Shown here piece after piece: positions 1 through 53,184 of a DNA stretch of 64,000 nucleotides. Under the pieces are notes generated by a model. It was given only the letters and a program-made list of their open reading frames with translations. It was not told the DNA's origin and ran no database searches. The stretch is from assembly GCA_003427395.1 (NCBI GenBank), contig BFEA01000016.1:552867-616866 (forward strand), given 5' to 3'. The stretch is from Chara braunii (lineage: Eukaryota; Plantae; Charophyceae). The position numbers and the translations under genes were made by a program. How positions within the stretch are numbered: position 1 is the stretch's first letter; each line of letters begins with the position of its first letter.

Positions 1-2920
1 GGGTAAGGGCAGTCCAGTTGTGCGTATTCTATCTATTATTTAGGCAGATCAGATACACTCTTCTATTCAGGTGAGTCTGATCGTATGCCATAGGTGAGGG
101 GGTTTATTAAAGGGAAAGAACTGAATNATCTAANGAACTACTTGGGCAAATTGANGTGNGATTGTNAGAGATGCTTGTTTATGCATGCCTATGGGCTCTC
201 ACTTGGGGCGTCTTTTTGATAGGATAGTTGCTTTANATGCTCACCAAGTGNTAGAGCCNCAGGTAGGTCAGATGGATGATGGGAGGGGGAACTTGGGATG
301 AAGATAGGACTGACCCTCCTAAGAAGTAGGGTCAATGCTAACCCACAATCTCACCTGAGGTTGTGCGAACTGTNATTGATCCTGAGTNATCAAGCNNGTG
401 TCAGGAGTTNGTCCCAAGTGTAGCCTTGNTTGTNTTTTCATCTTTCANCTTCGTATAAATCTTGGCAGCCTCNTGCTCCTACGGGAAGCGCTACCGAAAT
501 TTCTACAAATCTGAAAGAGTTAGTCATTTTGAGCTTGTAGAAATTCTGAAAAGGCACTTTTCCTACGGGAAGCGCTGCCGAAATTTCGTAGAATTTGAGG
601 AGTTANAATGTTTTTCAGCCAGAAGTTACTTAACAGATCTATNCTGACTAGAGGAGATACTTAGTGAGTTGATACTAGTAGAGGAACTAGGATACGACTA
701 GGGGGAATGTTTTCCCCTTGGCACAGGCATAAGTAGTACTCGTTTTTTGGCGTGTACTGTGATGCAGGTTTCCGTGTTGTCGCTTGAAGGCTTGATCTGT
801 TCAGCCTTTTCCTTCGAAAGATCACTCTTCTGTTATCACTGATAACAGGTCGGTTGCCGAACCGTCGGTTTACGACTCAACCCCAATTCACCCTCAATAC
901 TCAACCTAAAGAGGCTTTAGCCCTGGTGTTTTTATTGTTTTGTTGAGGTTTCACCCGGACTTTTATTGAATGGNCATTTAACAGAGGTACTCAGTATTTA
1001 TTTATGGTCGGTTGGCTGGAGGTTAGGGCTTGCCTGGCTAAAGCAAGGGGTATGAGTGTGGAGGTTGGTTGGAGTTGACTNCGTGTAGTGCATGAATCTT
1101 TGNTTGACTCTCTGATGTGATTGCATGTACGTGTGAGAGAGTCTCGTTGGATTTATGTTGAGTGATACTGCTTGGATTCAGATGGGCAAACCACATAACT
1201 GTCNTGAGAGTGAACTACCCCACAACCCTTTGTTTGAGTGAGACTGTTTTATCCCCGTCCTGCTGAAGTTATAATCTAAGTAGGCGTACGCTCACAGAGC
1301 TAATCCCGNCAATGCCTCTTCTAGTGATATTAAGNGTGCTTGTTNTATCCTTGTTGGGATTTCTTTGGTGGAACGATAAAGCTCCGGGCGNAAGGGTTAG
1401 CGTGTCGCTGGTGGTGCGTCAGACAACTCACCACCGCTCCTAATTCCTTCCTGCCCTAGAGGTCGTCTTACCCCGCACCCTTTGGGACACCTAAGGGTGC
1501 AGAAGACGAAAATGCCCTCAGGCCTGTTGTGCGCTCGCCAAAGGGTTACCTCCCCTTAGCGCGCCCCTCAGCCAACGCCTGAGCGTCGGATGCAACCCCA
1601 TGACTCAAGATAGGCCATTTGGGTATGGGCACCGCATAATGCGCCGTCATCACAGATACTCACGTAGAGCTACATAATGAATTGGTGTGTGCGGGTACTG
1701 CGCCTGCGCAATCTTTATACTAAGTCCATGCGCGCAGCACTCGCCGATTCTCGCACTGAAAGTTATGGGTCAGGCGGCGAGACCAAAAGCGCGGTGTGGC
1801 CGATAGACTCAAGGGGGGGTCGGTATCGCGAAGCGACACTTGGGCGGAGGACTAGTCCCAGTCGGCCTATGGGAGTCCGTGTACGGGCCTCACTATCCCG
1901 GACATCGGATAGCCTACGGGTAGGACTTTGGGCCTCCTCCGCACACGTGTTGTTTGGGCTTGCCTACCCCTTTCATTCTAGGAGGCCACTAAACTAATGA
2001 GAGCTGAAGTGAGTTTTCGTTTTGAATTTTCATGGTTGGAAGTTATAGTCCATGGCAACCATCAAAGTCAAACCCCTTGATGCTTGACCGCCACGACAGC
2101 TTAAAAGTTGTCTACTCAACCCCTCTGCCCCGGGTGTAGAAGAGGGTGTGGTCTTCAACCGCACACGGCGGTTGTTTGGCGTCGAGAGGTTACCCCTGCA
2201 AAGCGTCTGTCAGCCGAACGCAACCCCTTAGATTATCAAGGGCCGCGAGGCTACGAGTACCACATAGTACCCCATCAGCGCGAACGATTGCGGGTGTCCG
2301 CATGGCTGGTTGAGATAAGAAGGCCACCCGTTTGCTCGACTTTTATATGGAAGTCCGGCGCGCGATACTTACCTGATTCTCGTCGCCTAAAGTTATGGGT
2401 CAGATACTGAAGGGACTAGGAGTTGTTGCGTCGTGGCGTTGTGTGTGGTGTTTGTTTGTGTGTGTTTTATGTGTTATAAGTGGTAGGTGTGAGTGTTGTG
2501 GTGTAACGCATGGTGTGTGTAGTGCATCCCAGTCGACCAGCGTCGAGTCGCGTTTGGGACTTCAGCCCCCCAGTACGGCGGCTCGCGTACGGGTTCGATT
2601 CTTGGGTGTTCGACCGCGCGTAACCCCCTATGCTACAACGAACGAGAAACGCCCTCGGCAAGGCCACCTTTGGAATTCCATACGAAAGCTTTCGCATGTG
2701 GTTCAGTAGCTCGGCAGGGATACGCCCACCTAAGGGATGGTGACAGCTCCCGCAGGTGGAGGTAGGCGGTGCCTCGCTTGACTCCGTCCTGTCGTAGGGG
2801 CTCGCGAGAGGTACGGCTGGCGCACTCGGCCGGAGCGGCAAACGCTCTCCGCGACTAGTCCTGCCAAATCTTGCGTGACGCGGCCGGGAGGGTCCCCGTG
2901 GGGGACCGATGCGCTCGACA
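1..2920 (+). mobile_element. Giant LTR copy A (3' part; start lies outside the window), apparently inserted into copy B
   Basis: 820-1130 matches 8045-8355 and 2030-2920 matches 9020-9991. Ends in the family terminus CCGATGCGCTCGACA, followed by CCGG. Confidence 0.8.
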
Positions 2921-2975
2921 CCGGGGATGTCCGGGTGGCCTTCGAAAAAATGCAAAGGGGGGCCACTACGGGTGA

Positions 2976-4034
2976 TTCCTTCGGGACACCCATTGAGGTT
3001 GAGGCTAAACAGAGAGGGCTCGTACGACCCCTATGTGGGGTGAGGCACGAAAGGCCTGGGGATGAACTCGGACGCGAGCCGGGTCAGGTGCACGCGCGAG
3101 AGCAAGGGGGAGGCCGAATGGCCGTCGGAAGACCTGCGGGGCATCGCCCCGGCCGAAGTCCTTCGGCACATCCGTTAAAATTGGAATAATACAGAGAGGA
3201 TTTGCAAGGCCCCCACGTGATGCTGACACGTATAAACCCCAAAGGAGGCGCCAGGTTCGTGTGCCGAAGTAGGGTGGGGTCGCATCCGTACGGAGTTGGG
3301 AAGTTGTGGGGCACTGCCCCGGCCTAAGTTCGTCGGGATGTCCGTTAAAACTGGCGTGATACGGAGGAGGTTCGCCCGACTACTGTGCCTAAGGATGGCA
3401 TGTGCCAAAGTCCGGGAGTAAAACCGGACGTGGGCCGGACTAAGGGCGTGCAAAAGGTGGCGAGAGGGGGTAAGCAGGCCGAGTGGCCTTTGGTGCCGTG
3501 GCAGGGAGGTTAGCTCATGGTCGCCGTGCAAGGGTGATATCCCAGGGGCCTGGAATGAACCCGGACGCGGGTTGCACCGGGTGTGTGTAAATAAGAAAGG
3601 GGACAGGTCCGAACAGTTGCTGGAGTTAAGGTGGTAGGTGCCTGAACCGGGGCCCGAAAGGAGGCCAGGTTCGTGCAGGGATAGCAGAACAGAAGGAGGA
3701 ATTACTGCGGGAGGAATCGTTCGGGGAAAGTTTGTTACGCCGGGAAGATTAGCACGGCCCCTGCGCAAGGATGGAGCATAAGGATTTGGAAAGAAGCCGG
3801 ACGCAGGTTGCACCGGGTACATACAGATAAACGGGGAGGCGGGGGGGGGGGGGCGATCAGATCATCCCGTGGTTGGGTCCTCCCGGCGGCTGCCCGTGGC
3901 GGTAGTGGAGAGGGGCCAGTCGGCACGAAGTCCTTCGAGACTTCTGTTAAAATTGGAACGATGCAGAGAAGATTAGCCTAGCTCCTACGACCAGGCAGGG
4001 CATATAAATCTTGAGGGTAGCTCAGGTTTCTTTT
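2976..4034 (+). pseudogene. U6: Tandem array of at least 5-6 degenerate U6 snRNA copies inside LTR B
   Basis: 3948-3977 TAAAATTGGAACGATgCAGAGAAGATTAGC and 3744-3773 GAAGATTAGCAcGGCCCCTGCGCAAGGATG each match the conserved U6 sequence (recalled) at 29/30. Further copies start near 2976, 3158, 3328 and 3490. Confidence 0.9.
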
Positions 4035-4789
4035 ATTGTTATTTTCTTTTCTCTATCGCGGTCGTTTTGTCGGAGACGAGAATCACCGGATCGGGCGCTG
4101 CCAGGCAACCTGTTGAGCGGCCGCAGGAAACTGAGGAAAGCGCTGGGCGGGGTGCCGTTGACGTCAACGGGGTCGAGCGAAGAACGAAGGGGTGAATTGG
4201 GATGGGAAGCTGCGGCAGGTGCACGCGGCGCAGCGGACTCGGAGGTGTCGGAGAGGCGAGGTCGGGGCGCAGTGAGGAGGGGGCTCTAGGCCAGGGCGAA
4301 CGTGACTATGAAGCCAGATTTGGAGAAAAGTCAGTAAAGCAGGGGAGTGAAATGATATTGAAAAAGGGGGAAAGGAATCAGTGAGATGCCGATGTACATA
4401 GCCGGTCACCGGTGGTAGGTTCTTTCGAGCTTGGTCGTCTTGCTGATCAAAAAGGGGGGGCGGTGAGGTGCTGCGAAGTGGGTGGTGTTCGCGGACCTAC
4501 CCTGCAGGATGGCGGGAGATCCGCCCTCGCTCTGTTTGTCGAACGAGAAGCAAGCGGGGGCAGAGCTGGGACGGACGAGCGGGCCTACCTACTAAGACGC
4601 GCCAGGCCCCGTGCTGGTAAAGGGATTCGACTTTGCCTCTGCATCTTGTCCGACCTGGGGATTTAGTCGGACCACGCTCATCCGACGACAGTGATAGCCA
4701 TGGTGATTGCGAAGGTATCGATCCACGTACCACTGATAAGATTGCTCCAGGTCTGAGGGGCGACGGGTTGAAGACGTAGGCTCGGAGTC

Positions 4790-4860
4790 AATGACCAAGC
4801 TTAGTTGGTTAAACGCTCGAGTCGTGTTCGGAAGGTCTTGGGTTCAACCCCCACGGCCCT
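4790..4860 (+). other. tRNA-derived segment with Pol III A/B-box-like motifs inside LTR B
   Basis: AGCTTAGTTGG (A box/D arm) and GGTCTTGGGTTCAACCCCCA (T arm/B box) at tRNA-like spacing. The acceptor stem is poor. Confidence 0.5.
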
Positions 4861-6054
4861 CTTGGGCATCAACAGGCTGTTTTCTAGCAAGGTGACAACA
4901 GGCCAGCTGCGTGAGCTGCCGATCGGACTGTTAGCCAATGAGCTGACTGTCCTTTCGGCCTGCGCGATTATGGACTGTGGGCTGCGGACAGGAGGCTATG
5001 GACTGCAGACTGCGCACTACTGTGGACTGCGGGCCACTGTGTACCGCTGCTGCTACTGCTGATCTACATCGTTGTGTGCTGTTGCAAGGGCGGCCGCTGG
5101 GCACGCAGTCTTGCTGCCTTATGTTACTGTGCACTATTGCTCGCTGTGTACTGACGCTGTGCTTGCGGACTAAGTGCGGGCAACGACTGTTGTAGACTGT
5201 TCGCGTTTACTGTTGACCGTCGCCGTGCACGGCTGCGGCCTACGGCTGGCTGGGCACAAGTTACACGGTTGCTGTGGACTGCGCCCGGACTGCTGATTGC
5301 GGGCGACTATGACTCCGGTTGTTGACCATCGCCGGATACAGCTGCTTCCTGCCGTTAGTGTTGCGTGTTCCTGCATACTACCATAGGAGGTGGCTGGTTG
5401 TTATGCGCTGCGGTGGATGGATGTAGGGGAGTGACCGGGCTGGAAGGGGGGGGGTTATTGCTGCAGATTGGGGGGTCATCAGGGGCGGGACATCAGCAGT
5501 TGATTCAGAATTGACCGAGCTGTCACATTGGCTACCACTTGTGGGGCCCTCAGGCGCTGAAGGATTGAAGACCCTCTCGAGCGAGTCTGAGTATATCTTC
5601 CCTGAATCTGAGAGTCTCAAACCTCCTCTCCCTGCCCTTCTTACTCTAAGTCTGGTCCTTTGGTTCTGAGAGGAAGGCGGCAGGCGGGCTTGTGACCCGT
5701 GAGCCGCGCCAAGGCCTTTGTGGGAGGTTCGCCCCACCGATTGCGGGAGCTCTGCCGGGACTCAGGAGGAGTCCTGGAGGCAGGGAACTGAGTGGTGATT
5801 CCCGGACTCCCTCTATAAACCCAGTTATAACCCCTACTTGTACACCGTTCTACGGTTGACTGAGCGTATGGTGTGAACCCTGTATTTGATTTTGGGTTGA
5901 CTTTCGGGACATAAGTCAGACTAAAGTAAACGAACGTGTATGCAACCTCAGTTTCAGCCTTGTTGATTGTCTAAAAGCAGATTGTGAACAAAGGGGGTGC
6001 ATCTGGAGGAAGGTTGGGAGGAAGGCAGTATTGTGTGCAGTTTGACTGGGTCGT

Positions 6055-7005
6055 TAAGGCTGGAAGGTCTCCATAAGTTTGGGGAAGCCCAGCGCTTTGT
6101 TTATTTTGGTTTTGTGTGGAACAATTATGCCGCTCTATAAGTTTAGGTAGCCTGAGTGCTCTGAAGGTTGGGGAGTCCCCATAAGTTTGGGGAGACCCGG
6201 TGCTGTGAATTGTGTGGAGGGTCGGGACGCTCTATAAGTTTAGGTGACCTGACTACTTTGACTTGTGAGGGTTTGATTGTGGATGATTTTCAGGGACTCA
6301 GGGCGCTCTATAAGTTTAGTTACCTTGGGTTGCCTTGTTTTACTTGGAGGTTCTTTCAGTTTCTTTGATTCTGAACGAGGAGGTCTGAACCGCTCTATAA
6401 GTTTAGGTGGTTCAACCCTTCTCCTGTTTGTTATGAGGGGGTAATTCTAGTAGGGGGCAGACCGCTCTATAAGTTGAGGTGGCCTGGCCTACTGCCTCAT
6501 ATGGACTGGATCAGAGAGAAATGAATCTGACAGAGGATCAGACCGCTCTATAAGTTTANTTAGTCTGACCCAATGCCTCGCACATGTTGGAACCCAATGA
6601 CTATAATTTGGTTATATTGTACTACTATATTACTGGATCATAATAGGCCAGTCAGACCGCTCTATAAGTTTAGGTAGCCTTGCTATAGCTTATCATAACT
6701 GAAGAGAGTATAATTAAGAGGCATAACTGAATGTAAGCCTGGGAAGGCTGAGCAATGTTCTAAGTTGAGCGACCCAGCCTTATGTCCACTTTAAGATTAA
6801 GTTCAGAGAAATATATACAACTTGGCTATTTAAACAATTCAGGGCGGCTAGAATGGTCTAGTCATATGCCTAAAGAAGAGATAAATAGTTGTGTCCTCTG
6901 TTTGGTGTATATTTGGCTAAGTCAGATGCGCTNTATAAGTTTAGGTGATCTGACTTTAGGCCTGGTTAAGTTGGGCGCGCTCTATAAGTTCAAGTGGCCT
7001 GACCT
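6055..7005 (+). repeat. Hairpin array I in LTR B: ~12 stem-loops with conserved loop GCTCTATAAGTTTAGGT and non-repetitive spacers
   Basis: Motif near 6070, 6131, 6177, 6228, 6304, 6391, 6463, 6544, 6658, 6929 and 6978, mostly flanked by its own inverted repeat (TGAACC/GGTTCA 6386-6414; AGTCAGAT/ATCTGACT 6920-6955). Confidence 0.9.
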
Positions 7006-7289
7006 ATGCCTTATGTAAGTTGGGTATAAATGGGTAACTCACAGAGGGAGCATGAACTATTGCTTGCTAAGAACTTGGGGTTGGTGAGAGTACTTACCTT
7101 TGTGGTTTGGCCTGCATGTGACTGAGTGGGATTACTACTTGGTCTGGGTTTCAGGTTGACAGGTAGTTGTTTTAGAGGCTCGCCACGTGCTAGAGCAATA
7201 GGAGTTAGTTCAATTCCTGCATTTTCTGAGCTGATTTTATTTTACTTAGATCGATTCTTGCATTTTCTGAGACCCTTGGTTATACTTGG

Positions 7290-7780
7290 GTTTGTATAAA
7301 TTTTGGCAAGCTACTTTCTCTATGGAAAGCGCTGCCGAAATTTCTACAGGTTCAAGGAGTTAGTCAAATTTTTACTTGTCAAAAGTTCAAATTGTCTTTT
7401 TTTTGTATCTGACTAGGCAAAATTGGACTTTGAGAAGTTAAGGTTAGTTCCAAATTCGGAACTTAGCCTTGTATAAATTTAGGGAAAGCACTTTTCTAGA
7501 GGGAGTGCTGCCGAAATTTTTCCAAAACTGAGGAGTTAGTAAGATTTTGTCTGGGTTGAACTCGAGTTGCCTTTTGAGTTCGAATCTGACTTAGTATAAA
7601 TCTGGGAAGTCTCCCTTTCTAAAGGGAGTGCTGCCCAAATTTCTACTAATTCGGGGAGTCAGACAAAACTTGACTTTCCAGAGTTACAGATTATTTTTAT
7701 TTTTCATATTCGAGCGTATATAACTTTTGAAAAGACACTTTTCCTACGGGAAGGACTGCCGAAATTTTCTTAGTTTAAAG
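7290..7780 (+). repeat. Hairpin array II in LTR B (about 4 long imperfect hairpins)
   Basis: Repeats of TTGTATAAAT..CACTTTTCCTACGGGAAGYGCTGCCGAAATTTCTACA. The same unit is at 450-600 in copy A. Confidence 0.85.
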
Positions 7781-8054
7781 AAGTTAGATTATATTTTGGC
7801 AGGTGGCGATTCTGGTGATCCACTCTGTATAGGGGGGATTATACCATGATCCACCCTTACTTTGGGCCCTGCTTAAAGGTAGGTTCAGGCTTAGTCAGTA
7901 AGAGGGATCTTGGATGAGAATGTGTTATGGAGTTGTATTCTCCATACACTTATGATTTCAGCTTGGTGGTTGGCCTGCCTTGTGTTACAGGTCATCTTGA
8001 CCGTTTGATTCAGGATTTTGACTAGTGTCAGCTTGATCTTACAAGGATCATCTT

Positions 8055-8073
8055 CTGTTATCACTGATAACAG
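8055..8073. other. Conserved palindrome CTGTTATCA-C-TGATAACAG in the LTR core
   Basis: Perfect 9-bp inverted repeat; also near 830, 13665, 20805 and 36449. Confidence 0.7.
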
Positions 8074-8393
8074 GTCGGTTGCCGATTCGTCGGTCTACGA
8101 CTCAATTCCAACTCACTCTCCATACCCAACCTAAAAGGCTTTAGCCCTGGTGACTTTATTGTTTGTTAAGAATTTCACCCGGACTTTTATTGAATGGCCA
8201 TTTGACAAAGGTACTGAGTATTTAATTATGGTTGGTTGAACAGGAGGTTGGGGTTTGCATGGCTAAAGCAAGGGGTATGAGTGCGGATATTGGTTTGGGT
8301 TGACCCCGTGTAGTGCGTGTTTTGTCGTTCGATTCTTGATGTGATTGCAGGTACGTCCTGTGGCTCGGATTTTGGATTTGGATTGCCTGCGAT

Positions 8394-8410
8394 CCCTTAT
8401 ATATACATAT
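8394..8410 (+). promoter_or_regulatory. Candidate LTR TATA box (CCCTTATATATA)
   Basis: C-run plus TATATA, typical of plant LTR promoters. Present at the orthologous site in C (~13290) and E (~36045). An alternative CTATAAA lies at ~5815. Confidence 0.4.
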
Positions 8411-10260
8411 GGTTGTGAGGAGTCCCACTGTGCCTGTGAGAAGTGATCGTCTCAACTCTATCTCCCTTATGCGTGTATGCTTGGGTGTACCTATGGTGGG
8501 TGTTCGCAATGCCTGAAGGGCCCCGCGTTAGAAGTCTGCTTAGAGGTTAAGACTGAGAGGCATAGGGAAAAACTTTCCTTTTGCTTGTTTGCTTCTTGGG
8601 GGGTTTCTTAGTCGGACGCTGGTCCTGGGTCGAGATTCAAGGTCCTTGTCCAGGACATCCCAAGCCCTAGACTCTGCAGGGGAGGAACTTCCCCTCGTAC
8701 AGAGCCTATCTGCATTGGTTGTTGAGACACCCAACCCTAAAGGCGGAAATGTCGTGAGGGCCGAACAGCGTGTCCCTCAGCCGTTCAATATCGTGAGCGG
8801 TGACCCCTCACGATATATTCCTTCACCCACTCAATATCGCGAGGCCGGAACTGCGATTACCACGTATGACCGACATCGTATGGTTGGTATGTGATTGACC
8901 TGCAGCCGCGCGACTTTATACTAGAATCGTACGTGCGACGCTCCCCACACTAGCGTCTAAAGGTTATGGGATCAAAAGGGGCGCACACATTGCACGAACG
9001 CTTGGGATTATTAGATTTTCGTGGTTGGACGTTGTAGTCCGTGGCAGCTGTCAAAGTCAAACCCCTTGACTTCCACCCAAACCTGGAGTAGGACTTAACC
9101 CCAGGGCCGCATGAAACGACTACCACCACAGGTATGGACCTGTGTACCACCCACTCTGCACAGAGTGCAGAAGAGGGTGTGTGGTCTTCAACCGCGCATG
9201 GCGGTTGTCCAGCGTCGAGAGATTAACCCTCAAGGCGCATGTTAACCGACACTTGAGTGTCGAAGGCGACCCTCCAGATTAACGAGGACCGCACGAGTAT
9301 AGGTACTACATAACACCCCATCATTGCAACTGCTTGCATACGTTTGCGTTGCTAGTCGATATGAGTAGGCCCTTCGTCCGCGCGGTTTTATACTAAGTCC
9401 CACGCGAGACGCCCAGCCGGATTCCGCATCGGAAAGTTATGGGTTGGCTACCGAGGGGCTAGGAGCGTTGTCGCGTTGTTTGTGTTGTGTCATTTTGCGT
9501 GTGTGTGTGTGTTCCATTTTTTTTTTGTTCGTAAAGTGGTGTGCGCGTGGGGGGGGGGGGGGGGGGATGCGTCCTAGTCGATCGACTACGGGCCACGCTT
9601 GGAACTTCAACCCCCAAGATGTCGGTTCGCGTGCGGGTCCGATAGGCGTGCTACCGCTCGTACTCCCTGTGCTACAGCGAACGAAAAACGCCCTCGGCTG
9701 GTCCACCTCTTCGATTGCAACTGATTAGCTATTGTACTGTGGACTGATAGCTCGGCGGGGATACGCCCACCGAAGGGAGGTGACAACTCTCGTAAGGTGG
9801 AGGTAAGATGTGCCTCGCGTAGGCCCTATCCTGTCGTAGGGGCTCGCGAGAGGTATGGCTGGCGCACTCGGTCGGAGCGGCCTAAGGAAGCTCCTCTTGT
9901 GTGTTCGTAACGAGGTTGGTCCAACTCCTGCGTGACGCGGCCGAGAGGGTCCCGCGTTGCCATGTGCGGTGCCGGACCGATGCGCTCAACAGCGGTGGTA
10001 TACAAGTTGCCATAAATTCTTGCCTTTGAAAAACACGTGGTAAAAAAAAAAATGTACAGATTATAAAGACTATATCACCAGCGGTCAAGTTTTTCGTGGG
10101 TATCTAGAAATCGTATTTTATTGTGAAAAATTAACAGTCTAAGTGAAATTGTCATAGCATGATAGAGACAAAAAACTGAAAGGATACGTGTGATATAAAA
10201 CCAAATTGATGTTATTGCCATAGCCTGCGGGCTTTGTTCTCTTCCAGAGCCTTTAACCCC

Positions 10261-11725: not shown

Positions 11726-12588
11726 CCTGTCGAGGGCATTGCTCTCGCAAACGGACCCTCCCGGTCGTGTAACGCAAGATTTTGCATGACTTCGTCGTAG
11801 AGCGTTGCTGCTCCAGCCGAGTGCCGGAGCCATACGTTTCATGAACCCCTACGATAGGATAGAGTCACGCGAGGTACAACTTACCTCCACCCATGGGAAT
11901 TATCACCATCCCTTAGGTGAGTGTATCCTCGTCGGGCTACCAAACCATACAAAAGTTTTTTGTTTGCTATCGCAGAGGTGATCTTGTCGAGAACGTTTCT
12001 CGTTCGCTGTAGCATCGGGGGTACGTGCGGTTAACGTCCGAATCGGACCCGCTGTCAAGCGCATCGGTCCTACAGAGGGGACCCGTTGTCGGCCACGTCA
12101 CGCATAATTTTTCAAGACTTCATCGTAGAACGTTGCTGCTCCGATCGAGTGCGCTAACCATACCTCTCACAATCCCCTGCGATAAGATAGGGTCACGCGA
12201 GGTAAAACTTACCTCTACCCGTGGGAGTTGTCACCATTCCTTAGGTGGGCGTATCCTCATTATGCTACCGAACCACATGCGAAAGCTTTTCATATGCAAT
12301 TGCAGAGGTGGTCTGGCCGAGGGCGTTTCTTGTTCGCTGTAGTATAAGGGGTATGCATGGTCCTATGCCTCTATTAGACCAGTACGCGAATCGTCGCACT
12401 GGGGGCTGTGGTCCCACGAGCGACTCGATGTCGGTCGACTAGGATGCTTCCTTCTTACCACACGTTACACCACACCCCAAAAAAGTATCAAGTTACTCAC
12501 ACAAACACTGCTAATAATGGAAACAACATATGTTATGAAGAACAATAAAATGAACAAGAAAGTATCAAGTTACTCACACAAATCCGCT

Positions 12589-18129: not shown

Positions 18130-18955
18130 CTCTGTGAAACTTCGGATGCGACAACTATTAGATGGATCAATTAGCCTTTCGCCCCTATACCCAAGTCCGA
18201 CGAACGATTTGCATGTCAGTATTGTTGTGGGCCTCCACCAGAGTTTTCTCTGGCCACGCCTTGCTCATACATAGTTCGTCGTCTGCAGGTCCCAACGGAC
18301 AATGCTCACACTCACACCTCTCACAACAGATCATGGTTAGTGGGTGACGCATTTCCCAGTTGTGCCCCACCCTGCTTCAACTCCTGCTGCCCTAAAGGAA
18401 ACTTCGAAGGAACCAGCTACCAGATGGTTCGCTTAGTCGATCGCCTCTATACCCAGGTTCGACGATTGATGGACATTGCTACTGCGGCAGACCTCCGCCA
18501 ACGCTTCTCTCTGCGCTCAACTTCGGCATAGTTCTCGTCTTTTGGGTCCCATAGGGCATGCTCTAATTCACATCTCTCAGAGCAGATCGTGGTTAGTGGG
18601 CGGCGTATTCCCCAGTTGTGCCCCGCCCTGCTTCAGCTCCTGCTGGCCCAAAGGAAACTTCGAAGGAACCAGCTACCAGATGGTTCGCTTAGTCGTTCGC
18701 CCTTATACCCAGGTCCGACGATCGATGGGCACATTGCTATTGTGGCAGGCCTCCGCCAGCGCTTCTTTCTCTGCACCCAGCCTAGGCATAGTTCATCGTC
18801 TTTTGGTTTCCATAGGGCATGCTCACACTCACACCTCTTACCACAGATCGTGGTTGGCGGACGGTGCAATCGTAGAGCCCTCGCCACTCATGTTTCTTTC
18901 GCCTTGTGGCTTAGCCACCCACCCACTCGTATGTACACCGAGCTCCTCGGCCCTT
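18130..18955 (-). pseudogene. Three tandem degenerate LSU (25S/28S) rRNA fragments (LR3-LR5/D3 region) inside LTR C
   Basis: + strand matches the LSU reverse complement GGAAACTTCGGAGGGAACCAGCTACTAGATGGTTCGATTAGTCTTTCGCCCCTATACCCAAGTC.GACGAACGATTTGCA.GTCAG (recalled). Units start near 18130, 18390 and 18647. Confidence 0.9.
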
Positions 18956-21044
18956 TCCTCAACAATTCATGGGTGTACCAACTGAGCTAGGCGCAACCCG
19001 TTCGAAGATCGGCCCCAGTACCAACGCCGGGATCAGCCTAAAAACAAAATAGAGAATAAAATACATAAATTTACTAAAGCAATGGTTAAATAAAAATAAA
19101 AAGTTAAAAAATAGAAGACGGGGCTAGGGGGACCACAGACACCCTTTTGTCCCGCCAAATGGGCCTGCTGTTGTGGTTGTTAACAAAACCGAGGGGGATA
19201 ACCCCGCCAGACCCTGAACCCCTCGGTCCCTTCAAGCTGCTTCAATGCTCTTTCGTCGTCGTGTTCTGGGCCCGATCCCTGAACCTGCTGCCTGAAACTC
19301 AAACACCATAACCGATAGTGCTCTGCCCAAGGCTGGTACTGATACTATCAGATAACTTTATAAATACGTTCAACCAGTTGCACGCCCCAATGGAAATGCC
19401 CCAGGGCTGCACTTTGGCCTATCGGTCAGTTTCACGACTACCAAAACCGGTATCTTTTGTTATACAGGTGTCGGGTTCCACGCACGACCCTCACTCACTC
19501 GTCACTAGCTACAAGCCTATTCATCATTGATACTCAATTTTATCAGATATAGGAAAAATCACCCGCGCCTTAAGCTCGCGCGTTCACACACCCCCTAATC
19601 TTACCTTGCACGCGCCCGTTGTTCGGCTACAAAGAGTCAACCGTGGGCCGTGCAATACGTACATAGGCTCCTACCTTATATATCATCCTAGGTATCATTT
19701 GTGTAAAGTGCAAATATACGCATGAATATCCTTGTAAGGGTATTCACATCGACACCGTGCGAGAATTGTCGCCCGAGGCGTTGATCTCCCAACGTCAATC
19801 CTGCTCCGGTCGGCTAGGACGACCAATTTAACCATGCAACACACTTCAGAAAATAAAATCAAGCTTCATACGTAAATCACGCCCAGTCCCTTGTTTGCAT
19901 CCGATCCATAACTTTCGACGTAAGAATTAAGCAGGTGTCACGTGCGAGACTCTGAATAAATATCGGGGCGATGTAGACTTTCTCATGTCGACTAGCCACA
20001 CATGAATGGGCAAGTTGTCGCAATCGTGGCGAACTATGTGGTACATAGAACCACACGATCCTTAAAGATGTCGAGGTTCATTTTCGACACTCAAGTGTCG
20101 GATGACACACGCCTTGAGGGGTTAATCCCTCGACGCTCGACAATCTCAAGTGCGATTGCGAGACCTACCCTCTTCTGCACACTATGAAGAGGAGGGGTAA
20201 GTGGGCTTCGACCCTTGGTGGTGGCCAAACGCCTCTACCTCTGGGAGCAGGGCTCCATCATCGGAGGCCTGAAAACATGTTAAGGGGTTTGACTTCGGCA
20301 GTCGCCACAATTATAAAAATAAAAAAAGCAAAAATAAAAGGGGATCTCCCTTTGCTCTCAGTAAAAGTTTGCTCAATCCTTCCGTATGGTCAAAGTATAC
20401 CGCGTGAGTACTTAAAAACATGAATATAACGACCTTATTGGACACGAGGTGATCACTCTCACAATCACAGTGCGAATCCCTTCAAAATATACACATGATC
20501 GTAGACAAATTCAAATATGGACTTAAACTCACAAAGCATACCTGCAATCATACCAAAGATTTAACATCAACAGACCACGCGCTACACGGGATCAACTTCA
20601 ACCATTTTTTGTACTCACACCCCTTGCCTTAGTCAAACAAGTTCCCACCTTTGTCCAACCTTCAAAAATAAGATCACTCAGTCCCTTTTTAAATGATTAT
20701 TTAAGAAAAGTACAGCTAAAAATCCAAACAAGCATTTTAACCCACAAGGGTTAAGGCCTTAAGTCGAGTAGCGAGATTGAGTTAAAGTTGAGTCCAAAAC
20801 CGACCTGTTATCAAAAGATAACAGAAGATGATCCTCGAAGGATCAGCCTGAAGTTAGTCAAACCTTCGAACAATAAAAAAAAAAAATGACATGCAACACA
20901 ACATAAGTCAGTGCTCAAACTATGATTCAGTGAATATATGATCGAGTAAATATACGATTGAGTGAAGACATGATTAAGTGAATATATGATTGAGTGATGA
21001 AATGATCATACCTTCCTACCTTATCTTTGACACTTATCTAAAAA

Positions 21045-27832: not shown

Positions 27833-28145
27833 GCTATTATGAGGAAATCGTCGGGGAGGACCAACTGCTAGGTAGTTCGATTAGTCTTTCGCCCCCATAC
27901 CTTAGCCCGACGAACGATTTGCATGTCAGTATCGCTGCGAGCCTCCACCAAAGTTCCTCCAGTCTCTCCCTGCCCAAGCGTGGTTTACCAGCTTTCGGGC
28001 CCTAGCAGGCATACTCACACTCAAACCTCTCATAACAAATTGTGGTCGGAGGACGGTACCCTTAGCAGAGGGTCCCCACCACTCAGGTTTCCTTTTCCTT
28101 GTGGGTCAAAACACCCACCGGCTCACGTGTACGTTGAACTCCATA
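27833..28145 (-). pseudogene. Second LSU rRNA fragment inside LTR D
   Basis: GTTCGATTAGTCTTTCGCCCCcATACC...GACGAACGATTTGCAtGTCAGTATCGCTGCGaGCCTCCACCA. Confidence 0.9.
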
Positions 28146-29934
28146 ATCGACCTTCAATACTCCATAGGTGTATCAACTGAGTTGCGCCAGTAGGTTCTGA
28201 CAGCCGGTCCCGGAACCAGCACCGGTACCGGTTCAGGAAATGAAACTTAAAAAAAAAAAAAAAAAAGTAATAAAAGAAAAAAAGAAAAAATTGGAATTAT
28301 ACAGAGAGCAGGAAGGGGGGGGGGCAGCGACACCCCTTTTGTCCCAGCAGTCAGTCCCGAACTCAGAGCCGACGACAAAAGTGAAAGGGATAACCCCGTC
28401 GGGCCTTCAACCCAAGAGTTTCCTTCGTGATTCTTCTTCGCTCCTCCATCGCCGGTAGCCAGCCTCAATCCCTGAATCAGTTGCGTAGTAGTCGGCCACC
28501 GTAACCAATAGTGCTATGCTCAAGGCGAATACTAGCATTAGTGAAAACCCATATGAACGGGTTCCGCACACTAGATGGCCTCACCATTGTGCCCCAAGGC
28601 CATATCTTGGTCTACCACTCGGGCTTCCGACTGCCAAAAACAACGCCTTTGCCGCACGAACGACCGACCCTCCCTATGGTCGTATGCCTACAACGGCCAA
28701 CTATGATTTCAAGTTTTTAATCTCAATTTTTAATCAGATAAAGAACGTTTTATTCACTGTTACTGACCTATGGTACACAAAAAGCACCCGCGCCTTAAAC
28801 TTGCGCGTCCACACACCCTTCAACCCCATCTCATGCGCCCCCGTTCTTGCTGCTACAGAGAGTCACCCACGGGCTATGCAACACTTATCTAACTGGCTGC
28901 TTCAAGTACCGCCTTAGGTGCAGCTTGTGCGAAGTGCGGAAAAATACGCGAATACCCTTGTGAAGGTATTCACGCCGATAGCGTGGCAACTGCAAATTCC
29001 CAAGTTCCCAAACCTAGGTTGTGGAGTATGGGTTCTTGCATCTATATGGTGCAAATTCTCAAAATGACTAAATGCACGAAAATTGGCTTGAAAAAGGGTT
29101 TTGTTGCATATAGACCACCCCTTCAGGTCACAACGAGTGACCAACATGCATAAATAATACCTTGAAAATTGTAGGACTGGTCCTACCTTGTGAGAAATGG
29201 TCCCAAATAGGGGTTCAAAATCTTGGATTGATGCAATTTTTTAGGTCACTCAGTTCTTAATATCTAAAAGCGGCTAGTGGGCTTAGCGATGAGCGGTGTC
29301 GGAGCAGAAACCCATACAAGGGTATCTGCTCGGTAAAAAAATGTTGGGCATTGTCCGACTCTTGATGGGATTTTGTTTGAATGATTTGACTTGATGAGAA
29401 TGAGGCATTTGCCAAAGTCTATTCAGACATGACCTGCGACCAAAAGACTAGCGCATTTAATCTAGAGTTAAGACACCTGCGGCTTGTGAGAATGACAGTG
29501 AGGACTGGCGGTACGGTCGGTCACGTCTCGCGTTTGGCAAGGTCTTGAGGATGTACGACCGTTGGAATATTAAATAAAAAATATATTATATCCAAAACTG
29601 TGAAGCCGCATGATTCAGGTTTTAACTCGCCTAAAAGAGCAGTCGCGTTGTGTTGGAAATCATGTGTTTTTAGGAATTACCCTCGTCGGGGCTCGAACTT
29701 GTGTCGATATTGCAAAGGGTCGGTATCCTAGGTTGAATACGCGGTTGACCGAAGGATTAACAACCGACATGAAAAATGACACGGGCTGCTGATGTTTGTC
29801 ATGCCATGGAAGGACATTCCACTAAGGCGAAACTCTTCATACGGGAAAACAACTCCTATTGTAGACTGGGCTAGCCCCTTTTTGGTAAGGAGTGGTCCGA
29901 CACCTGGGCACAACGTGAATAATCTCGGATGCAC

Positions 29935-30040
29935 GATCCTTGGGATGACACGACTGAAATTATTCGCACCGCGCTAAGATTAGCATGACCCCTGCGCAAG
30001 GATGACACACATATATAGGGGAAATGGTCCGAGTTTTTTT
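29935..30040 (+). pseudogene. U6: U6 snRNA copy (3' half well preserved, 5' half degenerate), probably within old LTR copy F
   Basis: 29976-30008 AAGATTAGCATGaCCCCTGCGCAAGGATGACAC (32/33), then GAAATGGTCC..TTTTTTT. Confidence 0.9.
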
Positions 30041-32038: not shown

Positions 32039-35000
32039 GATACATCAAACTGAAAGGGGTTGTATCTTTTCAACCCCTTATCATAAAAATAAAATAAAAA
32101 CAGTTTTGAAAATCCCAAAATTTTAGCTATCTCGTGAAATTATGAGAACGTTGAAATAAAGAAAAGAAAACTAAGAAATAGGGTAGTTTAAAGAAAGGCT
32201 ATCGTGCGGCCACAATTAGTTTTTGATCTTGGGCAGATCAAGGTCTCACTGTGAGTTCGCGATTTTGCCTGGTGACTAGAGTGACGAGTAATCCTCCTCA
32301 ACCACTACCAGAAAGGCAGTTGTCCCCAGCTGCCACATAGAAGCACTCGTGCTGCCAGTGTGTGACAACGCACTTGAGTGTTATTGGGCTGCTGGAGGAG
32401 CTGTTGCAGGAGATTGGAGGGCTGCAGAGGAGCGTGGGAAGAGGAGCAGGACAGCTGAGGCAGGGGGCACTCTGCTCCGCCCTTAGGCTGGTGGTGGTCC
32501 TTTGAGACTACTCCTGGTCCACTCAGGTGGACCGAAACTCTACTCCACTGTTGAGGAACGGTGTTTTGGACCATGATTTTTCTAAGGTCCAAAGTTTCAT
32601 CAATTCTACGGTACTTTTCGACGTCAGTATCGACAAGACTTTCTTTGAGGAGGTGTTGGTACTACATTGTGGCAGGCTACACCCCATTTGGTGGGGTTAT
32701 TCTGCCGGATTTTTGGTACGTTGGTAGCACCGTTTTTTCTGCAAGGGAAATGCTGGTCGTTTTACGGCGTGGTTGTCGTTTTTACGGTACGGCAACGGTA
32801 ACGTTGTTCGGTGGGAGAATGCTGCCTGTTTGACGACGGGGAGTGTTCTTTTTTTAGGGGGGGACGTGCTGATGCGGTATTTGCAGTTTTTAGCAGGGGA
32901 TCGTGGTGGTATCAGTTGTAGTGCGCACATGAGACTTAGTTCCAAGGGCGGTGCTCGACTACGCTGCGTGACATTTTTTTTTTAGGAATACTGCAAGGTG
33001 CGGTCGACAACCTTGGAACATGCTTGGTGATACACGTGAAGATTATGCTGTGTGGCACCTGCGAATGAGTTGGGACACACGCATCAGGCTTTTTACTTTT
33101 TGGGGGGGCTACGTGACTCAGTGCGCGGGCTAGCAAAACCGGTTGGAACACGAGGAAGAAGCGAAGTGGTGATCGGGATTCACAACACGCACAGTTTCGA
33201 CATTCAGGGCCACCTTTATTTTTTCTGGGCCACACGGAGTCAACGGTTCTGATAATTGGAGTCATCTGGTGATGAAGGCGATAATGTGGGACCACGTAGG
33301 ACCGCCTGGATCCAGTTGGGACCAACACGGGATACACGCGGCCAAGGCGACGGTTTTCTGCGCTTGCGGTTTTGGGTTTTGACGCAGTTTTTTTCTTTTT
33401 TAATACGTGACGTTTTTTTTTTTTTTTTTTTTTTTTTTTTGAAGACCGTTCGGTGTTGTGGTGCATGAAACCATCTAAAACCGCTTGGGAACAGTTGGGA
33501 CTGTTGTGGGACAAGTGATTGCTTTTTTTTCTTTATGTGTGCAACTCGCCATCTTCACACTTGGGGTCACTGCATGTGGTATGTGTGAGTTGGGGACAGA
33601 CTGGGACTACCAGTTAGCGCGAGACTTACCTCGAGATTGCATTTTTTTTCAGCTACACGTATAGTTTTATTGGCTTTCTTGAGTGAGACAGGATGTGTTT
33701 GACAACACTTCACTCAATGCCAGTTTGTGACTCACATTCCTTTCACACCTGTGTGGACCCACACTTTGTTCAACCCTACATTTCATTGAAGATTCAAAGG
33801 GAAAAGGTGGGGTAGAAAATGTGGGGTCATGCATATGAAGAATGAGGATCTAACGGGAGTATGGGTTGCTGGATTGTTAGACTGTTGGTTGTTTTCTAGT
33901 GTGTTGGTAGTTAGAAGGATGTTTGCAAAGGGATTTGATTGTGCTTACTTACAGATAGTGAAAAAGATTGTTTTTTTTTCTACTTATCACTTGCCTGCTT
34001 GTCAAAAAAACTCATGTTTTGAAAATGATTAATTATGTGAGCACCATAAGAGAAACTTGTTTTAAATAAAGAAAGACAAAATTAAACTAATTTAGTATTT
34101 TCTTGAGATCTACCCCCTCTATCCCAAGTAACCTAAGTTGTTTATACATGTGCAAATGATTCTCATCCTCGATCTCCTCTGTTTTTTTTCATCTAAGTTA
34201 CCCTGAGCTTAGGAAAAACAAGAGCAATGAAAATCTACTCGCAGTGGACATGCCATCTTTATAGGAAGCATTTGAGGCGGGGGNTCATTGCTTTAGGAGC
34301 CGACCTTGTTATCGACCCAGAGTGGACTGTTCTACTAAGGGGTACTCTGCCGATCCGGTGGAGACCGCCCGACTTATGAGATACGAGTCTTGTGCTCGGG
34401 TGAGGAGGAGTACCCCATACCACTTCTTAGACAGTGAGACGTGGAACACTTCGAGTAATGCAAATGATCAATAATTATCCACAAAGCAGCTTGTCATTAA
34501 GGTCATTGACAAAGGGTGGCATGAGTGTATGCTTTGTATTCGGCCACTCTATGAATGAAATGAAAAACATTTGGCGGTCCAACTCATCAAGTCAAAACTA
34601 AGATAGTTTGACTACCTTGTCAACGGTCTTTTAAAGTCTGATCTCGTGTTGACTCGATTTTTCGTGTTTGGATCTGTGAAATTCGACCGACGTCATTTTG
34701 ATTTATGTTTCGCCTTGTGATATTTAAAAACTTGCAGTTATTCTTTCGACTTCCATATCGAAATGGACTCGCAACTGTCTAGTTTGTCGTAAGAGTTGTT
34801 TTTTGTTACAGACGGTTTCCTACCAGCTACCGTTACTCCGGTTTGATGAAGTTAGGTAAAGTTATATGTAAAAGGGACTAAGATTATTTGTAGGTTTCAC
34901 GCTAGGTTGAGACCACCCTAGTCGACCGAAATACATTCTGTAGCTAGGAGATCAACGTTGTCGAGCGCATCGGTCCGACACCGCACAAACGGGACGGGAC

Positions 35001-41177: not shown

Positions 41178-41352
41178 CCCGATGAAACTCTTGGATGGAA
41201 TTAGTGATTAGATGATGTGCTTAGTCTTTCGTCCGTTTACCCAGGTCTGACAATCAACTTGCACACGTCAGTATCGCTGCGAGTCTCCATCAGAGTTCCC
41301 TCTGGCCACACCCTGTTTGGGCATAACTCACCGCCCGCAGGTCCCAATGACT
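41178..41352 (-). pseudogene. LSU rRNA fragment inside LTR E
   Basis: TTAGTCTTTCG...CACGTCAGTATCGCTGCGaGtCTCCAtCAGAGTTcCCTCTGGC; the same LSU segment as in C and D. Confidence 0.8.
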
Positions 41353-42111: not shown

Positions 42112-42603
42112 TTAGGTTAAGGGGCCGGACGTCCGGGATGTCCGAGCGGACGTCTGGTCGGCTGTGGACCGGACAGGGTATGTCCGACCTACCGCAAAAA
42201 AAAAAAAAATAATAATAATAATAAAATAAAAAAAAATTGTGTGGCTTTCACCTCGCATAAGGTGTATGCCACCACATTTAGGCTCATTTGGGCAAGTAGA
42301 ATAAACAATAAAAATCTTCAAAGATTCTAATCCCCACCGATACCCCTCCCATCCCCACCAAAACCCCTCGTACCCCCCCCCCTTACCCCAAATACTACCC
42401 TATCACCAAAAGTTTAGAAAAATCTGAAAATTTTTGTGGGGGATCTCTAGGGCATGCACAACACTGTCATTTTTTTTTTTTTTTTTTTTAATATTATTCA
42501 GAACCAAAAACCCATCATCGGGAAATCCGGACGACGGGGGTACCAGACGTATGGGGGAAACGTCCGGGAGAGACGTTCGGTCTCCGGACCATTGGTACCC
42601 TAG
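42112..42603. mobile_element. hAT-type non-autonomous element inserted in the terminal palindrome of LTR E
   Basis: 8-bp TSD CTTGTAAG (42104-42111 / 42604-42611); imperfect TIRs TTAGGT.../...ACCCTAG. Confidence 0.75.
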
Positions 42604-44501
42604 CTTGTAAGGGTATTCACACCAACAACGCCTTAGGGAGCGGACGACGTCCGAGTTCATATGACGTTCTAACTGCGCATACCTATAGTACAACGAACGA
42701 GAAAACGCCCTCGACGACCTACCTCTACGCCTGCATGTAACAACTTTCCCACGTGGGTCAGTAGCTCGGTAGGGATACACTCCTAAGGGTGGTGACAACC
42801 CCTTACGGAAGGTAACTTGTGCCCCTCGGAACCTATCATGTCGTAGGGGACCGCGACAAGTACGGTTGCCACACCCGGCTAGAGCGGTGAAGGGACGACA
42901 CAACTGCGTCCATATCAATGATTCACAAGGTTATTTTGCGTTGTCCCCAAGTTGCCTCTCGTTTCAATTTTCTTTAACTCCTGCGTGACATGGTCAGGAG
43001 GGCTCTCGCTTTTTGCGCGAAACGCGGGAGCCGATGCACTCGACAAGTGATTAATGACACATCGCAAAATATTAAATAGGGCGACTTTGGCAGTTTTACG
43101 TGATCAATATAATTGATATGATTTTAAAGAACATAAATTTAGTGAATCATCGTTAAAAAAAAAAAAATCATGGCAATAAAAAATAATGGTGAATAAAGTT
43201 GTGGCTCAATTGGTTAAACTTGGAATAGAAGTATCACCGTATTAAGATAATCTTAAAAACTTGAGAACAATTGTGGTACGTTTACAAGTTAATAATTTTC
43301 GATATGGGCACAACCTTATGTTAATTGATATCCAGAGCAAAACGTCTAAAGTGCCGATGATTCAAATAAAGGACATTTTTTGTTTTTCAATGGTGAATCT
43401 CAAAGTTATGGTGTCCAAAGATAGGGAATAAAAGTGTCCACTCTAGAAGTTGAACATCAAATGATCATTTTATTACAATGATAAAGGTCAAATGGTCTGA
43501 AACAGTTAAATTAAGAAGGATTGGATTGCTTGCACATAAATAAAAACAAACAATAAGAATGGGTTTTAAGACCTAAGAGAATCTGCAACACCTAGTTGCC
43601 CAGTTGACCTTTGGGTTGAGGTTGTTATGAGACCGTTTATTGTTTTTTTGAAGCAAAGTAGCATCAAAATTTTATGACTGATCCTTTAAAAAAAAAAAAA
43701 AAACATGCCGGTTGGGTTTTAGGCATAGGCCCATACAAGTCATTTCATCAAATCCCTTATGTCTAACATACCTTCCCTAATTAGTACCTCAAAGAGTATT
43801 TCTCACCCGCTTCATCCTTAAGATTGGGTGACTTCGAGTTTTCCTACCTTTTATAAACTTGGAGTGGACACATTCTATGATAGCTCAATATGCGGAATGT
43901 GGTGATGTTTTAAGTTAGTTTCAAAAAGCAGTATTGCACTTCACGACACAAGCAATGAAACGTGCGCAATGAAACCAAGGTGCGTCGTTTTCAACAAAAA
44001 ATGTTGTGTTTTTTTTACTTTTGACATTGTATGCGCACAATTGATTGTATATGTGTCTGAGACAAAGGGAGGTTAGGAGCAGTTGCACGTTTAAAATCAA
44101 CGAGCAACTTCGTTTTTCCCATCCCCTCTCTCTTTTTCTTTTCCTTTCTCTCTCCCCATGGAAACAAAGAGGCTCATAGCGGTGCATTACTCATGTCCCG
44201 CGATTAACCTATATGTACAGTGCATCAAACAACAAGTAGAAAGAATAAGATACTAGCCCCATAATCGAATGAAGCCATGACCATACGAGTAGGTTACCTG
44301 GGACACTAGTTGGGCAGCGAGGTCATTGTTCGGACGGTCTTCTGCCCAGATCAACCTAGGCAAGCTCAAAATGCAAGTTTTTTTTGTTTTTTTCTTTTGT
44401 TGATGAGGCATTTATGCCCTTTGTAATCCCAACTTTATGTTTGGTTATCATTGCTATTGGTTGGAGGGTGGAAGGGGGGGCGATATAAATAGGGTTAGAA
44501 T

Positions 44502-52500: not shown

Positions 52501-53184
52501 AACCAACTGCATCTCGGTTGGAAGCCGCGAACCGCCCTTGACTTTCTGCTACCAGAAAGAGAACCCATTGCAGCACCCGGCAGCATAGAGTTTGTTGTCA
52601 AGTATGAACAGATGCTACAGCAGGCCGTTGAACATATCAGGAAATCTCAGGAAACAATGATTGCATATGAGAATAAGCATAGACGACCTTCTAACTTTCA
52701 GGTAGGCGAGAGAGTCTGGGTTAAGTCCGTTGAGCTTGGTCAAGAGTTACGCATATCCCGCAAGCTAATGCCACAGTACTTTGGGTCCTGGGAGATCTTA
52801 GACATTGTAGGAGATCAACCAGACGATCCTTCATATGTAATCCGCATCCCACCTCACTTACGTACCTACCCTGTGTTCCATGCCTCCAAGTTAGCACCTT
52901 TTGCTGCCACTGAGCAGTTTCCCTCCAGAAGATCAATGTTGCCCCCAACCATGGATGGCGAAGTGGACGTGGACCAGATCATTGAGCATCGAGTGATGCC
53001 TGTTCCTCGACCATCAGGCAGAGGGCGCCCTCCTAAACCGAGAATGCAGTATCGTGTGAGCTTCAGACATCATCTGGATCCTAAGGAGGATCGCTGGTTC
53101 ACACGAGAAGAACTCATGAGAACAACACCTCGAGTGATCTCAGGCTACGAAAGAGCACTCAAGGGGAAGATGCCTGCAGAATAA
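49560..53184 (+). pseudogene. pol: Pol polyprotein (protease, RT, RNase H, integrase, chromodomain), disrupted
   Basis: FADIGSTRNFIS; MPFG..NAP, YLDD; TTDASQYGIG; HDATGHFG..C..C; IVDRFTK, SIVSDR; C-terminal chromodomain. Several stops and frameshifts. Confidence 0.95.

Follow-up and report, generated by a model that had tools for sequence, protein, structure and literature searches.

The LTRs of the non-autonomous retrotransposons Cassandra, Helenus and Ajax ('TRIMp3') contain sequence resembling 5S rRNA or tRNA (PMC10886601; 10.1101/2023.07.14.548913; PMC7215508). Cassandra and TRIMp3 elements are tiny TRIMs; in all members, both LTRs have the cargo and its internal Pol III promoter at a fixed position (PMC10886601; 10.1101/2023.07.14.548913). 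Their architecture is miniature, with short LTRs and a tiny internal part that includes PBS and PPT. No snRNA is mentioned in one of these reports (PMC10886601). The second closely related system involves LINE reverse transcriptase, which switches templates onto U6 and so produces chimeric U6 retropseudogenes. U6 is a preferred target of this switching, and its promoter-less copies, fused to other sequence, decay as pseudogenes. Each chimera made in this way starts with a single full-length U6, continues into the 3' part of a LINE or mRNA, and has a poly(A) tail and target-site duplications (PMC4476161; PMC2104539; PMC11838501). In the library that we searched, no paper on U6 within LTR elements was found. 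Promoter-less reverse-transcribed copies of U6 are well known in mammals and fungi.

The 64,000-nucleotide stretch of Chara braunii DNA analysed here (the window) contains a tandem array of U6-derived sequences beside copies of a giant LTR family. Our main reading, to which we give a probability of about 0.65, is that the six or seven U6 snRNA-derived units, which repeat every ~120-215 bp, form a dead and decayed array in a low-copy segment outside the conserved LTR sequence. The locus has two features in common with Cassandra and TRIMp3: a derivative of a Pol III-transcribed small RNA beside or within LTR sequence, in the sense orientation, and a tandem arrangement, which is also known from those families. 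Unlike in those families, the LTRs here are 4.6-7.7 kb long and not miniature, no convincing primer-binding site lies behind the LTR end at 2920, and the array is low copy, absent from the other four LTR copies and without an upstream U6 promoter. The original prediction had described the locus as a U6 analogue of Cassandra. With neither a fixed place in both LTRs nor a family-wide distribution, the array does not fit that description.

With the LINE-made U6 chimeras the array shares its promoter-less, decayed state and a likely first step, namely a reverse transcriptase jumping onto U6. It differs from them in having six or seven tandem units with a common non-U6 leader and spacer. No LINE part, A-rich tract or flanking repeat was found in 2921-5413, and a whole-window repeat search with a minimum length of 150 gave no flanking direct repeat around this segment. 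It is unusual to find a multi-unit tandem U6 array beside giant LTRs in a streptophyte alga, and for now the locus is mainly of use as one more entry in a survey of U6-derived sequences across this genome.

The U6 model of Rfam (RF00026) matched 3158-3260 on the plus strand with 49.1 bits (E-value 2.6e-9 over the whole 64-kb window), which was the one unit to pass the gathering score of 44 bits. The match at 3930-4030 (+) fell just under this score with 43.9 bits, and a partial match at 3740-3805 (+), covering only model positions 43-105, reached 27.6 bits. A nhmmer profile built on three units, upstream leader included, added 2957-3073 (E-value 2.6e-6). A second profile, made without 2957-3073, added 3506-3582 (E-value 4e-4 in the window and 1.5e-6 in the gap alone). 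Since the unit at 3301-3451 is a member of both profiles, its separate support was taken from a blastn match to the unit before it (3135-3196 to 3305-3366, 77% identity, E-value ~1e-7). The gaps at 2930-3157 and 3262-3740 yielded no U6 match when searched with Rfam, which is blind to the decayed units there; these units are thus identified through paralogy alone.

In all, six units are supported and a seventh is doubtful; they lie on the plus strand and recur at the period given above. This agrees with the original prediction of at least 5-6 tandem U6-derived units in LTR-sense orientation, as the units run the same way as both flanking LTR copies. Unit 1 (2952-3096) is heavily decayed, keeps the ACAGAGA box and has lost the AGC triad (nhmmer, MAFFT alignment). 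Unit 2 (3134-3289) has a GC-hairpin leader and is the best full-length match, with an AGC triad that reads TGC. Unit 3 (3302-3451; blastn match, MAFFT alignment) has the same leader as unit 2, and both its ACAGAGA box and its AGC triad are mutated. Unit 4 (3506-3582) consists of the 3' half, tail and spacer, and its 5' half (~3446-3505) is hardly recognisable. The doubtful unit 5 (3598-3680), which would have an internal deletion, was missed by both nhmmer profiles and was recognised by eye and in the MAFFT alignment only.

The last two units correspond to the two Rfam matches below the gathering score. Unit 6 (3694-3825) has a well-kept AGC triad and internal stem-loop, while its ACAGAGA region is deleted and its 5' part decayed. 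Its model positions 44-73 differ from the consensus at position 55 only in the cmscan alignment, which confirms the 29/30 identity originally noted for the unit at ~3744. Unit 7 (3905-4038) again carries the leader. Over 3948-3977 it also shows the 29/30 identity first noted, the sole change being a G in place of the first A of ACAGAGA (cmscan alignment). This unit has a terminator-like site at 4010-4026 followed by T-rich bases, and a T-rich tract at 4017-4056 (+), as read from the sequence, ends the array. The other units have no T-rich tail, and the T-run is absent from six of the seven.

The units share more than their U6 part. A GC-rich leader of ~20 nt lies just upstream of U6 position 1 in units 2, 3 and 7 and, in a looser form, in unit 1, much as the original prediction had noted for several units. 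Leader similarity links 3135-3196 to 3305-3366 and 3150-3205 to 3921-3977, and the tail and spacer at 3551-3582 are 91% identical to those at 3787-3818. We take the tail motif of the units to be a diverged U6 3' end by comparison with a separate U6 3' fragment at 29976-30038, which retains a terminal run of seven T. Since leader, tail and spacer recur between units, the copied unit was longer than the U6 RNA and comprised U6 plus ~50-90 nt of other sequence. Considering that non-U6 sequence was copied along, we suggest a single founder that was duplicated in tandem rather than six or seven separate U6 captures. Of the earlier idea of repeated template switching onto U6, the origin by reverse transcription is still plausible, and the repetition is replaced by a single founder.

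The founder would have been one promoter-less U6 copy with a GC-rich leader of ~20 nt and a short trailing spacer. This copy was most likely reverse-transcribed from U6 RNA. The U6-plus-spacer unit may then have been duplicated in tandem at this site; unequal crossing-over, slippage and template jumping on a single RNA are the candidate routes. After the amplification the units would have decayed, mostly by transitions and small deletions. A 344-bp dimer was considered as a higher-order repeat and found no support in the pairwise unit scores.

The surroundings of the array are dominated by a giant LTR family of roughly 10^4 copies, at least five of which, 4.6-7.7 kb in length, lie in the window. 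Copy 1 (1-2920, plus strand) is a 3' part that is cut by the start of the window and ends in ...CTCGACA at 2920. Positions 450-2932 are colinear with positions 7284-9997. The conserved core of copy 2 (5414-9991, plus strand) starts with TG and ends in ...CTCAACA. It matches the other copies from 5528, with weaker similarity from ~5427. The minus-strand copies C, D and E are of a long type with 3.1-3.7 kb between the 5' terminus and the core, and their termini form the inverted repeat TGTCGA...TCGACA. The 5' terminus motif TGTCGATG... occurs only in these three copies (19730-19747, 28956-28973 and 42603-42620), with none upstream of the array. They also carry LSU rRNA pieces or arrays 1-2.8 kb upstream of the conserved core. 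The 3' end motif is found in five copies, at 2920, 9991, 43045, 34959(-) and 12053(-), with unrelated sequence behind each.

The array had been predicted to lie inside an LTR. We find that the LTR of the family ends at 2920, right behind which 182 DNA contigs of public run X1 diverge from the window (their continuations agree at 0.36), and that the core resumes at ~5414-5540. The array begins 30-50 nt after the LTR end, and neither blastn nor the nhmmer profiles found it in the other four LTR copies of the window. No convincing primer-binding site or conserved leader follows 2920; an apparent conserved leader in a multiple alignment of the sequences behind the LTR ends was not significant pairwise. 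A minus-strand LTR from 4016 to 2929, in which the T-rich tract would serve as polypurine tract, was also set aside, being backed by its TG...CA ends only. The array is therefore not part of the conserved LTR sequence, nor is it a feature of the LTR family as such.

The segment between the two LTR copies (2921-5413, plus strand) is low copy and G-rich; in it, the U6 array is followed by a single-copy middle part and, on the right, by T/G-rich sequence. Its GC content is 0.58-0.59 and its GC skew +0.11 to +0.26, with +0.24 to +0.26 in the first two parts. Apart from U6 scraps it has no match elsewhere in the window, and it contains no terminus motif and no LSU piece. A weak tRNA-like relic lies at 4790-4862, in the orientation of the array, with a recognisable D-loop and T-arm and broken stems. 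Its score against RF00005 was 15.4 bits, where the gathering score is 29 (E-value 0.83 in a search of 161 bases), and ARAGORN found no tRNA at this position. An antisense ORF at 3175-3822 and an ORF at the LTR end (2467-2955) gave no matches as protein queries.

We next estimated the copy number of the segment from summed contig depth, using DNA contigs of two public runs (X1 and X2) in which single-copy contigs have a depth of ~5-14. In X1, summed depth was ~200,000 in the LTR bins 2588-2981 and 8,000-300,000 in the LTR bins 5543-7700. The non-U6 part of the array at 3376-3572 had a summed depth of 78 (X1) and 42 (X2), and 3573-3769 had 445 (X1) and 194 (X2). Further right, the X1 depth was 16-40 over 4164-4754 and 46-96 over 4755-5345, and it stepped from 201 to ~71,000 between the bins 5346-5542 and 5543-5739. 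Outside the U6 blocks, the segment thus has summed depths of 16-450, compared with 10^4-10^5 in the LTR. This puts the non-U6 parts of the array, together with the 1.5 kb that follow, at about 1-8 copies.

The paralogs of the segment, which are known from short contigs only, comprise one contig over 3742-4008 (~85% identity, with the match starting at 3742, in unit 6), 2-5 contigs over the spacer at 3812-3925, and contigs at ~84% over 5019-5421. In addition, a near-identical second copy of 5010-5403 enters different sequence at 5403|5404. The outcome that the original prediction had set against itself was an array in flanking DNA and not in an LTR. What we find comes close to this. It is not strictly so, because a few paralogs exist and because the segment could be the private variable region of one LTR copy.

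We judge the chances to be even that 2921-5413 is separate DNA between two LTR copies. A less probable account, which we still take seriously, is that the segment is the hypervariable 5' region of a long-type copy 2 that lost its conserved 5' terminus, or had it displaced, when the copy-1 element inserted, and that U6 is LTR cargo. Copies C, D and E do have 5' regions of 3.1-3.7 kb, the core-adjacent part of which is unalignable even among themselves, and the GC content and sense-strand G-skew of the segment resemble those of their variable regions. The array lies 1.4-2.5 kb upstream of the core, a position matching that of the LSU rRNA arrays in the other copies. In a comparison of 4-mer profiles, the equivalent region of copy C in sense orientation ranked first among ~500 windows on two strands as a match to 4900-5413. 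The unit tail also has a weak profile match at 17963-17928, in sense orientation in the variable region of copy C (E-value 0.007-0.045).

Other observations speak against U6 as LTR cargo. The segment is low in copy number, contains no LSU piece and has no alignable homology to any LTR 5' region, and the 5' terminus motif is missing upstream of the array. Moreover, GCGG flanks 5414-9991 on both sides (5410-5413 and 9992-9995) with TG at 5414, and the near-identical paralog of 5010-5403 departs into other sequence at 5403|5404. Copy 1 ends directly at the left side of the segment, and the 5' terminus could be hidden by a nested insertion there. The core-adjacent regions are unalignable among copies C, D and E, and missing homology is thus weak evidence against LTR membership. 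Positional homology between 5000-5413 and the core-upstream regions of these copies was also considered and rejected (z of 0.7-1.3, with C against D itself at z = 1.9). Histories other than separate DNA or a private variable region take the remaining share of the odds.

More tentatively still, the hypervariable 5' region of the giant LTRs may repeatedly capture abundant nuclear RNAs and amplify them in tandem at the same place. The array would then be the private cargo of one lineage, acquired when reverse transcriptase switched templates onto RNAs that were co-packaged with the element. Seen this way, three copies in the window have LSU rRNA in that region, and copy 2 has U6 and a tRNA-like scrap. 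An origin of the unit 7 leader from the LSU rRNA unit of copy D was rejected; its basis, a shared 12-mer and z = 4.6 among 27 comparisons, was treated as chance, and Rfam gave no LSU match at the leader. If the segment is LTR cargo, U6 would join the short list of host RNAs carried by LTRs (5S, tRNA), and an RNA-capture hot spot in giant LTRs would be indicated.

It is unlikely that the array goes back to a genomic cluster of formerly functional U6 genes that decayed after it was abandoned or swamped by transposon insertions. Regular spacing, full-length units, a single orientation, the low copy number of the region and the terminator-like T-rich tail of the last unit would all suit such a cluster. 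Against this, six of the seven units lack a T-run, the leader is a GC hairpin and not a promoter, and the array is surrounded by a tRNA-like relic and LTR copies. The spacers are, furthermore, only ~50-90 nt long and GC-rich, with neither a USE nor a T-A-rich box visible. Land-plant U6 is transcribed from upstream promoter elements. The plant USE motif occurred 42 times in the window compared with 41.6 in shuffles and never upstream of any unit on the plus strand, although the combination of USE and TATA-like box is the land-plant type of U6 promoter and may not be that of this alga. The absence of a plant U6 USE promoter noted in the original prediction thus holds.

Returning to the reading of a dead, decayed array, we looked at how the decay is distributed within the units. 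As reference we used a proxy U6 that combined the best-kept units and was inspected visually alongside the Rfam consensus. The 5' core block (U6 positions 24-54) was compared with the 3' block (positions 55-78) by Fisher test in units 1-4, 6 and 7. Unit 7 retains 29/31 positions of the 5' block and 11/24 of the 3' block (p = 0.0001). The corresponding values are 18/31 and 14/25 for unit 1 (p = 1.0), 27/31 and 16/24 for unit 2 (p = 0.10), 22/31 and 15/26 for unit 3 (p = 0.40), 15/33 and 16/24 for unit 4 (p = 0.18), and 19/31 and 20/24 for unit 6 (p = 0.13). The blockwise decay that had been described for the array is therefore significant in unit 7, and the five other units decay evenly.

Transitions outnumber transversions among the changes in the units by 72 to 32, and A-to-G is the largest class (37/104). 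A slower decay of the AT-rich 5' half is therefore not the explanation for the well-kept blocks; in addition, units 1 and 4 lose their 5' block as fast as their 3' block. The two well-kept blocks of ~30 nt sit in the neighbouring units 6 and 7, on either side of one spacer. Plain uniform decay does not explain two adjacent units that each have one almost perfect 30-nt block. Considering that these blocks flank one spacer and that the match of the paralogous contig begins exactly at 3742, they may belong to a younger patch, a conversion tract or a secondary insertion. Such an origin suits the two good blocks better than selection does.

Selection had been suggested in the original prediction on the grounds of the blockwise decay. 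In the cmscan and MAFFT alignments, no unit keeps the ACAGAGA box, the AGC triad and the internal stem-loop together. Unit 2 has TGC in place of the AGC triad and retains 16/24 positions of the stem-loop block, and the box of unit 7 reads GCAGAGA next to a 3' block of 11/24. The U6 5' stem contains non-standard pairs and deletions in the cmscan alignments. As no array-specific RNA reads were found either (see below), nothing points to selection. That the units are selected as U6-variant or U6-decoy RNAs, with different units keeping different functional halves, is highly improbable: the 29/31 retained in the 5' block of unit 7, its significant block difference and the 29/31 retained over positions 43-73 of unit 6 are set against even decay in five units, a sole change in the good block of unit 7 that falls in the ACAGAGA box itself, good blocks around one spacer with a paralogous match from 3742 that suit a younger patch or conversion tract, and the lack of a promoter and of reads on array-specific sequence.

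RNA depth in two oligo-dT runs, of which 6-12% of the reads were used and in which a short non-polyadenylated Pol III transcript would be missed, was 0 on 3376-3572 (maximum 0.08, in one column), 0 on 4164-4754 and below 2 on 3573-3769. The LTR-specific U6-variant reads that were to be looked for in RNA-seq data were accordingly not found on the array-specific parts in these two runs. In the oligo-dT data, the array looks like a silent, decayed relic without sign of function. RNA reads on the U6 blocks start exactly at U6 position 1 (3158 and 3930), are unlike the array in the letters before it, and leave the array sequence at 3197 or 3971. This indicates that they derive from other U6-bearing RNAs. 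At the DNA level, the high contig depth in the bins of units 2 and 7 is likewise due to the U6 blocks alone, and position 3218 is covered by one contig. The U6 5' block reaches a very high contig depth, in keeping with an abundant repeat elsewhere that carries U6.

Reads from the two oligo-dT RNA libraries that align at 3158-3197 and 3930-3971, in units 2 and 7 of the U6-derived array, match only the U6 5′ block. The match begins exactly at U6 position 1, while the letters 5′ of this position are diverse and unlike the window (agreement 0.36-0.4). Given these start points and the diversity of the preceding letters, various polyadenylated transcripts of the organism seem to carry embedded U6 sequences.

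U6 sequence was also found beyond the array. A separate U6 3′ fragment lies on the plus strand at 29930-30040, beginning at about U6 position 44, and scored 48.1 bits against the Rfam U6 model RF00026 at 29975-30038, where its seven-T run is intact. This fragment and the well-preserved block in unit 6 start at the same point in U6, and on its 5′ side the fragment is preceded by a scrap similar to U6 positions 66-80. Closer to the array, 4189-4227 (+) resembles unit 1's tail and its spacer, with a local score that was reached by one of 60 shuffles. The array may once have been longer, extending past 4034.

The array region (2921-4034) has a strong G-skew of +0.26, and A-to-G is the most frequent change relative to U6 (37 of 104 changes). 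The same excess of G on the sense strand occurs in the LTR copies. Together, these observations suggest that mutation is biased in a strand-asymmetric way.

Roughly 760 nt 3′ of the array and in the same orientation, we found a weak tRNA-like relic at 4790-4862 (+; Rfam tRNA model, 15.4 bits, E-value 0.83 in a 161-base search). Its stems are broken, the D-loop and T-arm are still recognisable, and ARAGORN predicted no tRNA there. Further right in the segment, the T/G-rich part at 5010-5403 is an independent repeat module. It is present a second time in nearly identical form (contig depth 23 versus ~12); this other copy runs into different sequence at 5403|5404, and matches to ~84% paralogs of the region end at 5019 and 5421.

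The giant LTR family is bounded by the terminal inverted repeat TGTCGA...TCGACA. Its termini were located at 2908-2920, 9979-9991 and 43033-43045, and on the minus strand at 34959-34971, 12053-12065 and 19730-19754. Four-base flanks of the form NCGN (CCGG, GCGG, ACGT and GCGG) follow the 3′ ends. From the summed contig depth, the family seems to number in the thousands genome-wide. In copy C (-), the last ~330 bp are tandemly duplicated (12053-11728; 2497-2925 matches 12474-12048 and 2590-2920 matches 12051-11728), so that its true end may be 11728 rather than 12049.

All three long LTR copies contain eukaryotic LSU rRNA fragments (model positions ~675-954) in their 5′ regions, on the minus strand at 18167-18277, 18669-18941, 27861-28137 and 41207-41335. 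Those of copy C are repeated in tandem (18136-18603 to 18398-18864, 78%). A Ty3/gypsy internal region occupies 49771-53184 (+), with Pfam matches to protease, reverse transcriptase, RNase H and the integrase SH3 domain. Just 5′ of it, a 517-aa ORF (48021-49574) had no Pfam match; a plus-orientation LTR 3′ end is located at 43045.
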